NCBI RefSeq assembly: GCF_000006765.1
Contig: NC_002516.2
Strand: one strand, 5' to 3'
DNA from: Pseudomonas aeruginosa PAO1
Lineage (GTDB): Bacteria; Pseudomonadota; Gammaproteobacteria; Pseudomonadales; Pseudomonadaceae
DNA length: 64,000 nucleotides
Shown here: piece after piece, positions 20,631-24,057 of the stretch
How positions within the stretch are numbered: position 1 is the stretch's first letter
How the letters are laid out: each line of letters begins with the position of its first letter
Position numbers and translations under genes: made by a program
The notes under the pieces: model-generated
Databases searched by the model: none
What the model saw: only the letters and a program-made list of their open reading frames with translations
Told to the model about the DNA's origin: nothing

Positions 20631-20741
20631 CGCTCGTTCTCCGCTTGACTGCGTTGCCGGGCAGTATTGCGGCACCAGCCAATGCAGCGGCAGACGCGCT
20701 CGCGCCAGACTGCCGATCATTTCGGGCCAGGACACGCCAGC

Positions 20742-21815
20742 ATGAGCCGCCGCACGGACTCCGACGCACCGACCATCACCGCTGCCTATCCGCGCCTGCT
20801 GCTCGGCCTGCTGGAGGAACGCGGCCTGGACGGACGTGCGCTGCTGCGGGAAATCGGTCTGTCGACGCTGCGACTGGAAGAGCCGGAAGCACGCGTCACA
20901 TCGCAGCAGTACCAGGCGATCGCCGCCACGGCGCTCGCGCTGAGCGGCGACCCCGACCTCGGCGCACAGCTCGCCTTGCGCACGCCTCCCACCGCCCATG
21001 GCAGCCTGGGCTACGCGATGATGGCTTCGGCGACGCTCGGCGATGCCTTGTGCCTGGCGCTGCGCTACATGCCGCTGCTGCAGGGCAACGTCGAAATCAG
21101 CCTGCTGCGCGAGGACGAGCAGGTGATCCTGCGCATGCTGCCAGGCCCCGCGCTCCCGCCGGCACTGCACCGGTACTTCAGCGAAGCCCTGCTGATCGGC
21201 CTGTATCGCTCCGGCGCCTGGCTGCTCGGCGAACCGGCCCTGGTCGGCAGACTCGACTTCGACTATCCCGAACCTGCCGTGCCTGTGCCGCTGCCGCAGT
21301 GCCGCTACGACCAGGCCCACGTCCAGCTGGTGTTCCCCGCCATCCTGCTCGCCCGCTCGCTACCGATGGCCGATCCGGCTGCGTTGCGCCGCGCCCGCGA
21401 ACACTGCGAGCGCGAACTGGCGCTGCTCGATGCCGGCCGCCGGGACATCTGCGCCCGCGTGCGGCTGGAGCTGGAACGCCAGGAACAGCGTTTCCCCAAC
21501 CTGGAGGAAGTAGCCGCGCGCCTGCACCTGTCCAGCCGCAGCCTCAAGCGGCATCTGCATGACGCCGGCACCAGCTTTCGCCAGTTGCTCGGTCAGGCTC
21601 GCCAGCGCCAGGCCTTGCGATTGCTGCGGCGTCCCGAGGTGTCGTTGCAGCGTATCGCCCTGTACCTGGGTTACAGCGATCCAACCAACTTCACCCGCGC
21701 CTTCAAGCGCTGGACCGGCGAGCCGCCGAGCGACACCCGCGCCCGCCTGCTGGGCGGGCAACCAGTTTCACGAACAAATGCCAAGCGCTCGACAAATCCC
21801 TCGCGTTTCCCTTGA
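20742..21815 (+). CDS. AraC-family transcriptional regulator (OruR-like N-terminal domain)
   Basis: HGSLGYAMMASATLGDAL N-domain; C-terminal double HTH (LEEVAARLHLSSRSLKRHL, IALYLGYSDPTNFTRAFKRWTG); divergent from the SDR. Confidence 0.9.
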   Translation: MSRRTDSDAPTITAAYPRLLLGLLEERGLDGRALLREIGLSTLRLEEPEARVTSQQYQAIAATALALSGDPDLGAQLALRTPPTAHGSLGYAMMASATLGDALCLALRYMPLLQGNVEISLLREDEQVILRMLPGPALPPALHRYFSEALLIGLYRSGAWLLGEPALVGRLDFDYPEPAVPVPLPQCRYDQAHVQLVFPAILLARSLPMADPAALRRAREHCERELALLDAGRRDICARVRLELERQEQRFPNLEEVAARLHLSSRSLKRHLHDAGTSFRQLLGQARQRQALRLLRRPEVSLQRIALYLGYSDPTNFTRAFKRWTGEPPSDTRARLLGGQPVSRTNAKRSTNPSRFP

Positions 21816-21888
21816 GCGCGGCAAGCGCTGTCCTATGCTGCTGCGGCCGGCATCCGGCCGGCCTCGACAGCGATATGAAAGGGACTTT

Positions 21889-22869
21889 ATGAAACCAGCG
21901 ATCAAGCGCGCCTGCCTGCTCGGCACGGCACTGTTCTCCCTCTGCGCCAGCGCAGCCCAGGCGGCCGGCGTTCTGGTAGGAACCTGGGACCTGCGGGGCA
22001 ACGGCCAGCTCGCCGCGGTCTACCGCGACGGCGCCAACCTGCAGGTGGTGGAAGGCGGCAGCACCCGCAACTACAGCTTCGGCAACGTGGTCTGGTCGGT
22101 CTTCGGCGCCACCGATACCGACGGCCAGCCCGGCGCGGAAATCCTGGTCAAGGCCGGTCCCGACCTGGTGATCGTTTCCCACGCCAGCACCACCCAGCGC
22201 AAGTACCCGGTAGGCAACGTCTCCTGGGCGATCATGCGCGCCACCGACGTCGACAACGTCGCCGGCGACGAAGTCATCCTCAGCATCGGCAACGGCGTGC
22301 GCACCGTATTCGATCGCACCCGTACGCAACGCGACGCCACCTTCAGCTACAACGGCACCTGGGGCCTGTTCGACGTCGCCGACGTGGACGGCGCGCCGGG
22401 CAAGGAACTGGTGCTGAACATGGGCAACGGCGTCAAGGTCATCGACCCGCGCACCAGTGGCGCCAAGGACTTCACCTTCAGCGGCTACCACGCGCTCGCA
22501 CAGATCGCCGACCTCGACGGCCAGCCCGGCGCGGAGATCATCGGCCGCACCAGCACCGGCATCTACGTGATCAGCAACGCCAGTTCCCGCAAGGAATACA
22601 GCATCGGCGCCAGCGCCTGGGCACTCTATGGCGGCACCGCGGACACCGACGGCAAGCCGGGCAACGAGCTGATCGTGGTGATGCAGGGCAAGGTGCGGGT
22701 CATCCACCACGCCAGCGGCGCCAGCAGCGACTACCGCATCGGCGACGTCAACTACAGCATCGATTCGGTGGCCGATATGGATGGCCAGCCGGGCGCGGAA
22801 ATCCTCGTGCGCGACGCCAACGGCAAGCTGTTCGTGATCAACGACCGCACCGGCAAGGTAAGCAGTTGA
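21889..22869 (+). CDS. Secreted FG-GAP/VCBS-like repeat protein, predicted beta-propeller
   Basis: Sec signal peptide (AQA cleavage); six repeats of about 43-45 aa, each with D-x-D-G/N-x-x-G-x-E, plus one degenerate N-terminal unit; 326 aa. Confidence 0.8.
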   Translation: MKPAIKRACLLGTALFSLCASAAQAAGVLVGTWDLRGNGQLAAVYRDGANLQVVEGGSTRNYSFGNVVWSVFGATDTDGQPGAEILVKAGPDLVIVSHASTTQRKYPVGNVSWAIMRATDVDNVAGDEVILSIGNGVRTVFDRTRTQRDATFSYNGTWGLFDVADVDGAPGKELVLNMGNGVKVIDPRTSGAKDFTFSGYHALAQIADLDGQPGAEIIGRTSTGIYVISNASSRKEYSIGASAWALYGGTADTDGKPGNELIVVMQGKVRVIHHASGASSDYRIGDVNYSIDSVADMDGQPGAEILVRDANGKLFVINDRTGKVSS

Positions 22870-22883
22870 GCCGGGCGGGTTGC

Positions 22884-22916
22884 GTAGGGCGGGTACGCCA
22901 CCGGCGCGACCCCGCC
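22884..22916 (+). repeat. Degenerate REP-like element
   Basis: GTAG followed by imperfect palindrome GGCGGGTACGCC-acc-GGCGCGACCCCGCC in the gap between convergent genes. Confidence 0.4.
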
Positions 22917-22951
22917 AGCCAACGCGCCGGAGGGCCGTCGGCCCGCGCATG

Positions 22952-22980
22952 AAAAAGGGGAGCCTCGGCTCCCCTTCTTT
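22952..22980. terminator. Bidirectional intrinsic terminator
   Basis: A5-GGGGAGC-ctcg-GCTCCCC-TTCTTT between the convergent propeller gene and hemE. Confidence 0.88.
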
Positions 22981-22989
22981 CGTTCCGGC

Positions 22990-24057
22990 TCAGCCGTGGT
23001 ACTGCGCCGACAGCTCGTGCACCGCCTCGAAGAAGGCGCCGGCATGGGCCGGGTCGACTTCCGGGGTGATGCCGTGGCCGAGATTGAACACATGCCCCGT
23101 ACCCTTGCCGTAGGCCGCCAGGATCCGCGCGACTTCGGCGCGGATCGCCGCCGGATTGGCGTAGAGCACCGAAGGATCCATGTTGCCTTGCAGGGCTACG
23201 CGCTCACCGACACGGGCCCGGGCGCTGCCGATGTCGCAGGTCCAGTCCAGGCCCAGCGCCTCGGCGCCGACCTCGGCCATCGACTCCAGCCACAGGCCGC
23301 CTCCCTTGGTGAAGAGGATCACCGGCACCCGGCGTCCGTCGTGCTCGCGGATCAATCCATCGACGATCTTGCGCATGTAGGCCAGGGAGAACTCCTGGTA
23401 GGCCGCCGCCGACAGGCTGCCGCCCCATGAGTCGAAGATCTGCACCGCCTGGGCGCCGGCGTGGATCTGCCCGTTGAGGTAGCTGGTCACCGATTGCGCC
23501 AGCTTGTCCAGCAGAGCGTGCATGGCCTTGGGGTTGTCGTAGAGCATCGCCTTGGACTTGCGGAAGTCCTTGCTCGAGCCGCCCTCGACCATGTAGGTGG
23601 CGAGGGTCCAGGGGCTGCCGGAGAAGCCGATCAGCGGTACGCGGCCGTTCAGCTCGCGGCGGATGGTGCGCACGGCGTCCATCACATAGCCCAGGTCCTG
23701 TTCCGGATCGGGAACCGGCAGCGCCTCGATGTCGGCCAGCGACGAGACCACCTTGCGGAAGCGCGGGCCTTCGCCGGTCTCGAAGTACAGGCCCTGGCCC
23801 ATGGCATCGGGAATGGTCAGGATATCGGAGAAGAGGATCGCGGCGTCCAGCTGCGGGTAACGGTCCAGCGGCTGCAGGGTCACTTCGCAGGCCAGCTCCG
23901 GGTTCATGCACAGGCTCATGAAATCGCCGGCCTTGGCACGGGTGGCACGGTATTCCGGCAGGTAACGACCGGCCTGGCGCATCATCCAGACGGGGGTGAC
24001 ATCGACGGGCTGCTTGAGCAGGGCGCGGAGGAAGCGGTCGTTCTTCAGGGCAGTCAT
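22990..24057 (-). CDS. hemE: Uroporphyrinogen decarboxylase
   Basis: [36 protein letters not shown] motifs; 355 aa. Confidence 0.97.

Follow-up and report, generated by a model that had tools for sequence, protein, structure and literature searches.

PA5033 of Pseudomonas aeruginosa, a predicted exported seven-bladed propeller and candidate matrix binder in biofilms

Background

This study deals with the gene PA5033 (PA14_66540) of Pseudomonas aeruginosa, a stop-free frame of 326 amino acids, translated from sequence, at positions 21889-22869(+) of a 64,000-nucleotide stretch of the PAO1 genome (contig NC_002516.2), hereafter the window; its identity was established by the NCBIfam family NF052506, by matches of published primers and by the neighbouring genes. 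The described proteins with which its product can be compared are the fungal lectins PVL, PAL and AAL-2 (PDB 2BWR, 5MB4 and 4TQJ/4TQM), the matrix proteins Bap1 and RbmC (PDB 6MLT) and the propellers of the integrin alpha type. In AAL-2 and PVL, the loops that join strand 1 to strand 2 hold cations on the exit face of the ring, and two blades bind Ca2+; the sugars of AAL-2 lie on the entrance face, between the connector from strand 4 to strand 1 and the strand 2-3 loop, and its affinity for glycans is unchanged by Ca2+ (PMC4483166). The N-acetylglucosamine (GlcNAc) pocket of both lectins is formed by an Asn or Asp that opens the long connector, a Gly-Gly-Trp, a His and the main chain of the strand 2-3 loop (PMC4483166). 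The propeller of Bap1 and RbmC alone binds the Vibrio polysaccharide (VPS) directly, and in Bap1 a VPS tetrasaccharide is bound close to the pseudo-symmetry axis, in a cradle formed by four Trp of different blades (PMC10102183, bioRxiv 2026.08.03.742583).

PA5033 was recovered by Zhang et al. in 2013 when transposon mutants were screened for a tobramycin susceptibility specific to biofilms, and is more highly expressed in biofilms (PMC3634840). According to the same study, deletion of the gene in PA14 leaves biofilm formation normal and halves the biofilm bactericidal concentration (MBC-B) of tobramycin and gentamicin, not that of ciprofloxacin, while overexpression raises minimum inhibitory concentrations (MICs) and a mutant is reduced in its killing of Caenorhabditis elegans (PMC3634840). 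Passmore et al. (2015) found the protein 15.5-fold enriched in the biofilm secretome (supernatant), described "6 or 7 repeats reminiscent of FG-GAP propellers" and considered it to be confined to P. aeruginosa (PMC4334185). In 2021, a homology-modelling study built PA5033 on AAL-2 (4TQJ) and named it a putative extracellular lectin (PMC8516228), and Kaleta et al. (2022) observed a 5.25-fold induction in biofilms and, for a PAO1 transposon insertion mutant, reduced biofilms with wild-type tolerance (PMC9262955). A 2022 review (PMC9607943) swaps PA2070 and PA5033, giving PA5033 as a TonB-dependent receptor and PA2070 as the protein with an export signal, which is the reverse of the 2013 paper.

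The propeller and lectin ideas for PA5033 are thus already in print. A preliminary description of this gene, made from the sequence of the window, knew of no function assigned to it; given the published phenotypes, the presence in the biofilm secretome and the propeller and lectin predictions, this is out of date and holds only as regards biochemical activity. The novelty of the hypothesis is accordingly low, as both the gene and the idea are in the literature. What is new here is the AlphaFold2 model of seven times four strands, the failure of membership in the Pfam FG-GAP and PVL families, the relatives outside P. aeruginosa, the G-N-x-x-W connector motif, the analogy with Bap1 and an allele generated by a deletion between repeats.

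Predicted fold of the mature protein

The N-terminus of PA5033 is that of a typical Sec signal, with basic residues, a hydrophobic stretch and A-Q-A followed by A-G, and this region is modelled by AlphaFold2 as a lone helix (predicted local distance difference test score, pLDDT, 66-73); Zhang et al. report a type I export signal (PMC3634840). A lipoprotein was considered and rejected, F-S-L being a poor lipobox in front of Cys19 and Cys19 not being conserved in relatives. The mature protein (300 aa, 31.6 kDa, isoelectric point 5.0) has 34 Asp and Glu residues and no cysteine. As the preliminary description had it, the signal is followed by repeats only: the Pfam scan of PA5033 gave no other domain, catalytic or anchoring, and matches to Phage_TAC_14, Cupin_3, DUF7116 and PknH_C were discarded, all being below the cut-off and inconsistent between family members.

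Six loops of the type D-x-D-G-x-P-G-x-E begin at aa 76, 120, 165, 208, 252 and 296, with spacings of 44, 45, 43, 44 and 44 aa, and the six loops quoted in the preliminary description were all found letter for letter at the 43-45-aa spacing given there. In the DNA, the loop segments recur six times at a spacing of 129-135 nt; TRF calls no tandem array because the repeat units have diverged. A first unit, D-L-R-G-N-G (aa 34), is degenerate, and several relatives read D-L-D-G-D-G-x-x-E at this place. Seven units is therefore the right count, as had been proposed from the degenerate unit, and AlphaFold2 also gives seven groups of four strands.

Both models are confident. For the full protein (alignment of 30 sequences), the mean pLDDT is 93.9 and the predicted template modelling score (pTM) 0.85; for the mature protein (32 sequences) these values are 96.1 and 0.90, and each model contains 28 strands in a seven times four arrangement. 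In each blade of the models, the acidic loop of 8-9 residues joins strands 1 and 2, and the turns between strands 2 and 3 and between strands 3 and 4 have 2-4 residues; the strands of blade 1 are at aa 28-33, 42-47, 50-55 and 58-63. Using Foldseek against the PDB, the fungal lectins PAL, PVL and AAL-2 were found at or near the top, with E-values from 1e-9 to 1e-7, and a scan of 48,161 representative chains that is independent of Foldseek placed only propellers at the top, on which ground a non-propeller fold was rejected. The seven-bladed propeller suggested in the preliminary description, with AlphaFold as its check, is thus well supported as a predicted class, since the models are confident and all the top matches of the fold searches are propellers.

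The models further suggest how the ring is built. Each blade seems to consist of four contiguous strands, starting from the N-terminal strand 1, which would leave no strand-exchange Velcro, unlike AAL-2 and Bap1; in AAL-2, the ring is closed by a C-terminal strand placed in blade 1.

The choice between propellers is less clear than the class. With VIA-align, AAL-2 and PVL reach Z-scores of 14.0-14.5, Bap1 13.2 and the PL11 lyases 12.6-13.0, and the highest structure-based identities (15-19%) are all with Ca-binding propellers of the FG-GAP type, namely AAL-2, PVL, the PL11 lyase YesW and Vibrio cholerae Bap1. PVL-type lectins are among the nearest solved folds and lead the Foldseek search. PAL, PVL and AAL-2 superpose on the 44-aa blades of PA5033 with a template modelling (TM) score of only about 0.43 and a root-mean-square deviation (rmsd) of 9-12 A, and are not clear of WD40 and DPP4 propellers by Z-score. 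Judged from the models, PA5033 has no close neighbour among solved structures, nor are the lectins set apart from other propellers. The diatom pyrenoid-shell protein 8WQP, matched by phmmer (E 0.003; two stretches of about 50 aa, aa 37-91 of PA5033 against both halves of 8WQP), was set aside; the match is probably due to chance because it is lost with the family profile and is missing from both fold searches.

Comparison with FG-GAP repeats, lectins and matrix propellers

The propellers of integrin alpha and FG-GAP (PF01839) and of FG-GAP_3, formerly VCBS (PF13517), are like PA5033 in their seven-bladed fold and strand-loop-strand motif, and differ in their blades of about 60 aa, against 44 aa. 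Locally, the motif of PA5033 does resemble FG-GAP, with F-G-A-T, then D-T-D-G-Q-P-G-A-E, then I-L-V-K-A-G-P, and in protein-language-model space its nearest neighbours that carry a name are, without exception, FG-GAP/VCBS clusters (score 0.92, 171 shared features). The sequence searches do not extend this resemblance. Neither PF01839 nor PF13517 was matched in PA5033 at E<=10, no significant match to the Pfam FG-GAP models was obtained among 30 family members (best E 0.99, in one member), and in the nearest genome, where the PA5033 gene is identical, searching all six frames for PF13517 gave 0 matches. Using hhalign, a profile of 173 PA5033 repeats was aligned loop on loop with 37 repeats of the FG-GAP_3 type, at a level that is not significant (P 0.017, probability 2.7%). 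Membership of the Pfam FG-GAP/VCBS families, raised in the preliminary description with a Pfam search as its check, was thus not borne out in PA5033, in 30 relatives or in the nearest genome. As every sequence test fails, we file the protein outside Pfam FG-GAP, in a repeat family of its own whose architecture is integrin-like.

The acidic loops can be compared with the cation loops of AAL-2 and PVL because both are placed between strands 1 and 2 by strand order, and in both cases the loop is acidic and has 8-9 residues. In PA5033, positions 1, 3 and 9 are acidic and position 5 is Q, V, A or K; the family alignment shows Gly at position 7 and Glu at position 9 to be the most conserved residues, and the loop of blade 4 is one residue shorter and poorly conserved across relatives. 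The canonical Ca2+ loop D-x-[DN]-x-[DN]-G-x-x-[DE] is found only in blade 1 of some relatives. By analogy, binding of Ca2+ by the acidic loops of PA5033 is plausible. The further step, a Ca2+-dependent binding of glycans, had been drawn from the analogy with PVL and does not follow from it, as the sugar pockets of AAL-2 are on the opposite face and its affinity is independent of Ca2+.

The opposite face of PA5033 should carry the connectors between blades, which have about 5 residues (G-N-V-V-W, G-N-V-S-W, Y-N-G-T-W, G-A-S-A-W and G-D-V-N-Y). These share a motif G-N-x-x-W in which Asn/Asp and Trp/Tyr recur, and in the family alignment hardly any variation is seen in the Tyr and Trp on either side of each connector.

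The fungal lectins PVL, PAL and AAL-2 share with PA5033 the plan of seven four-stranded blades and no other domain. They differ from it in having blades of 56 aa, with a structure-based identity of 14-18%, and in being cytoplasmic whereas PA5033 is exported. Bap1 and RbmC, like PA5033, are secreted and biofilm-specific, and the metal-binding propeller of Bap1, of the FG-GAP type, serves as a non-enzymatic binding module; the PA5033 model aligns with Bap1 over 273 residues (VIA Z 13.2, 15% identity). With eight blades, Bap1 has one more than PA5033, and it further possesses a Velcro strand, an adhesive loop of 57 aa and a beta-prism lectin domain as an insertion; PA5033 is a bare seven-blade propeller. 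Our best working model for PA5033 is a non-enzymatic propeller that would bind the matrix and function, by analogy, like the exopolysaccharide-binding propeller of Bap1/RbmC.

Proposed function and alternatives

We propose that PA5033 is an exported seven-bladed propeller that acts in biofilms as a multivalent, non-enzymatic binder of matrix or glycan, a reading to which we give a probability of about 0.55. The product would be exported by the Sec pathway and then released from the cell, and its whole mature part would form a single compact propeller of 44-residue, four-stranded blades. Six or seven acidic strand 1-2 loops would ring one face, where they probably hold Ca2+ and stiffen the ring, a structural role. 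The opposite, entrance face would be lined by the short connectors from strand 4 to strand 1, whose G-N-x-x-W motif could gather Asn/Asp and Trp/Tyr residues of six blades about the central axis, making this face the likely ligand site; from there, PA5033 could bind or crosslink, in the manner of a lectin, an exopolysaccharide or another glycan of the biofilm matrix. Such a role would account for the biofilm-specific expression, the secretion and the modest effects of its loss on architecture and aminoglycoside tolerance. Few genes of P. aeruginosa have been linked to an aminoglycoside tolerance specific to biofilms, and PA5033 is one of them; were it a propeller that binds exopolysaccharide or acts like a lectin, this would provide a mechanism for the phenotype and a third extracellular target of the lectin type beside LecA and LecB.

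Several points weigh against this reading. The matches to solved structures are generic, with TM scores of only 0.41-0.44 and rmsd of 8-12 A for every propeller target, and the WD40, IFT-A, DPP4 and BamB propellers reach scores similar to those of the lectins in VIA-align, those of WD40 and DPP4 lying within 1 Z unit. No sequence link to lectins, integrins or FG-GAP was obtained in Pfam, PDB-sequence or profile searches, and, among PDB sequences, PVL and AAL-2 were found neither by phmmer nor by hmmsearch with the family profile. The loops are without the acidic position-5 ligand of the integrin-type Ca2+ site, D-x-D-x-D-G-x-x-D. Where the connector of AAL-2 has about 14 residues (Asn...Gly-Gly-Trp...His), those of PA5033 have about 5, so that a GlcNAc pocket of the PVL type cannot be conserved in that form; as read from the sequence, this mismatch lowers the case for a lectin of the PVL family, not the case for sugar binding as such. 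Closure of the ring and exposure of the Trp and Asn residues on it are deduced from the topology of the model alone. Finally, the phenotypes are small (two-fold) and depend on the strain, PA14 showing lower tolerance with normal biofilm and PAO1 the opposite (PMC3634840, PMC9262955).

A more specific form of the proposal is that PA5033 is a minimal, stand-alone counterpart of the Bap1/RbmC propeller, in which conserved Trp and Asn, ringed around the axis of an apparently Velcro-less propeller, would bind and crosslink Psl or Pel and thereby aid biofilm-specific aminoglycoside tolerance. We advance it tentatively, considering it rather unlikely in this detailed form. If true, it would mean that the protein tightens the matrix, and that a compact class of FG-GAP-like repeats is missed by the current Pfam models.

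Propellers are also generic platforms for protein binding, and those of WD40, BamB and YxaL match PA5033 about as well as the lectins do (Z 12-14). PA5033 could accordingly be a scaffold that docks secreted or envelope proteins, as BamB, YxaL and integrins do, for example a biofilm-specific protease or a matrix protein; its co-regulation with mep72/bamI in the biofilm secretome and in LolCDE inhibition data sets is in keeping with this. We regard such a scaffold as unlikely: there is no conserved adjacent partner gene and other pseudomonads have a different context, its protein-language-model neighbours and the propellers with the best structure-based identities are of the Ca-binding, carbohydrate-directed FG-GAP type, and a recurring Asn/Trp motif is what sugar sites typically show.

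The drug phenotypes could be read in another way, with PA5033 serving as a sink for cations or aminoglycosides in the periplasm or the matrix, lowering the effective drug as the ndvB glucans do. The deletion phenotype is indeed specific to tobramycin and gentamicin and spares ciprofloxacin, the mature protein is acidic with six to seven carboxylate-rich loops, and with overexpression the gentamicin MIC goes up from 2 to 16 ug/ml, eight times the vector value. This last effect argues for a non-specific cause, since the ciprofloxacin MIC rose too and two unrelated genes in the same vector had the same effect. Moreover, one protein would probably not sequester enough drug, mole for mole, to change the killing seen at 100-200 ug/ml, and the PAO1 mutant had wild-type tolerance; a sink is thus improbable.

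Least of all do we expect a small polysaccharide-active enzyme, such as a lyase like the PL11 rhamnogalacturonan lyases (Ca-binding propellers with the active site on the propeller face), for although YesW and the Bacillus licheniformis PL11 enzyme are among the highest structure-based identities (18-19%, Z 12.6-13.0, rmsd about 8 A), the PL11 enzymes are eight-bladed, have about 580 aa and build a cleft from long loops where those of PA5033 are minimal, PA5033 has no Pfam or NCBIfam enzyme match and no PDB sequence match, and no conserved cluster of Lys, Arg or His stands out in the family alignment.

Distribution of relatives and allelic variants

The word search recovered relatives with 37-53% identity, those with a named source belonging to Pseudomonas citronellolis, Stutzerimonas stutzeri, P. 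tohonis and Pseudomonas strains; a relative with 34% identity is encoded by a Paenibacillus, and the relatives from metagenomes are weaker (25-31%). The 2015 statement that the gene is confined to P. aeruginosa is out of date, as relatives were found outside this species. Matches were obtained in only 5 of 301 Pseudomonadaceae species genomes, and in only one of 34 in the genus of the window itself: the family is sparse and patchy, and its members differ in gene context. Fusions to PKD, Ig-like/cadherin-like or fn3 domains occur in some relatives and point to a surface or secreted binding module.

Within P. aeruginosa, allelic variants are found. A 21-nt exact repeat, CGACGGCCAGCCCGGCGCGGA, is present in the loops of blades 2 and 5, at window positions 22119-22139 and 22515-22535, 396 nt apart, and a P. 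aeruginosa allele of 194 aa (P0004) corresponds to an exact in-frame deletion between the two copies, by which three blades are removed. Two further members have this 194-aa form, which occurs on several contigs including one of 6.8 Mb. Its four-blade product cannot close a seven-blade ring alone. Three other variants from other P. aeruginosa assemblies (P0002, P0003 and P0005; 354 and 226 aa) are frameshifted forms of PA5033, with out-of-frame stretches inside or after the repeats; they are natural pseudogenes or, alternatively, the result of errors in the sequencing of GC-rich repeats.

Gene model and genomic context

The 326-aa protein matches NCBIfam NF052506 (PA5033_fam) with 412.2 bits (E 7.1e-124), the curated cut-off being 100 bits. 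The model has 284 positions, about one blade less than PA5033 and than most of its relatives of 327-333 aa, and because it is one blade short the match is split into two overlapping stretches (1-198 and 120-283); the seed of NF052506 may have been a blade-deleted allele. The PA5033 cloning primer of Zhang et al. (2013) is an exact match to window positions 21889-21908 and their quantitative PCR primer matches 22074-22093. The nearest genome (6.3 Mb) carries a single copy encoding a 100% identical protein.

The frame of PA5033 is open for a further 110 codons 5' of its start (window positions 21559-21888), where it overlaps the 3' end of the AraC gene. We place the start at 21889 and not at 21559 because AAGGGA precedes this ATG, a classic Sec signal follows it and the published cloning primer begins there. 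Automatic open reading frame (ORF) callers could over-extend the gene, as an open frame of 436 aa is reported here and one of 451 aa for the nearest genome. On the opposite strand, a 415-aa ORF at 21703-22950(-) was rejected as a shadow of the plus-strand frame by codon-position GC, the GC content at the third codon position being 0.90 in the PA5033 frame against 0.65 in the antisense ORF.

The features of the locus are collected in Table 1. PA5032 and PA5033 are predicted to form a two-gene operon (PMC4334185, PMC13086498), gltD is found beyond hemE, and the neighbours in the window agree with the PA5032-PA5036 region of the literature. An origin of PA5033 from a plasmid or mobile element was rejected, as the only plasmid match is that of hemE and the GC content is the same as in the surroundings.

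Table 1. Features of the PA5033 locus (window positions); AF2, AlphaFold2
Feature	Position	Strand	Basis or remark
AraC-family regulator PA5032 (putative start)	20667..21815	+	NCBIfam AraC-type matches; 73 bp upstream of PA5033
Shine-Dalgarno-like AAGGGA, 4 nt 5' of ATG	21879..21884	+	sequence reading
PA5033 coding sequence (326 aa + stop)	21889..22869	+	open frame, NF052506 match, third-position GC, primer matches
Sec signal peptide, aa 1-25, predicted cleavage after A-Q-A	21889..21963	+	sequence pattern, AF2 lone helix
Blade 1, aa 28-63, degenerate loop D-L-R-G-N-G-Q-L-A at 21988-22014	21970..22077	+	AF2 strands
Blade 2, aa 69-107, loop DTDGQPGAE at 22114-22140	22093..22209	+	loop, AF2, DNA repeat
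Blade 3, aa 114-151, loop DVDNVAGDE at 22246-22272	22228..22341	+	loop, AF2, DNA repeat
Blade 4, aa 158-196, loop DVDGAPGKE at 22381-22407	22360..22476	+	loop, AF2, DNA repeat
Blade 5, aa 201-238, loop DLDGQPGAE at 22510-22536	22489..22602	+	loop, AF2, DNA repeat
Blade 6, aa 244-283, loop DTDGKPGNE at 22642-22668	22618..22737	+	loop, AF2, DNA repeat
Blade 7, aa 289-325, loop DMDGQPGAE at 22774-22800	22753..22863	+	loop, AF2, DNA repeat
GC-rich hairpin terminator, between PA5033 and convergent hemE	22955..22976		sequence
hemE, convergent to PA5033	22990-24057	-	window gene identification

The AraC/hemE context is not kept around the 39%-identical homologues in another Pseudomonadaceae genus (g11). 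In two genomes of this genus, the homologue is flanked by two genes on the same strand (L010 4549-5691(-) and 6991-7308(-); L011 likewise), one for an unannotated lipoprotein (lipobox L-L-G-G-C, 380/323 aa) and one for a secreted protein of 105 aa, with earP nearby. The lipoprotein, the 105-aa secreted protein and earP are all missing from the PA5033 locus of P. aeruginosa. A conserved neighbourhood was accordingly rejected as a clue to function, these flanking genes being unrelated to those of P. aeruginosa.

In another Pseudomonadaceae species (L006, G058:C20:69279-72455), a frame of 66 aa matches the last blade of PA5033 with 46% identity over 57 aa. About 0.8 kb from it, and extending as far as the locus end, is a stretch with 33% identity to PA5032; by its sequence, the region looks like a decayed locus of the PA5032-PA5033 type.

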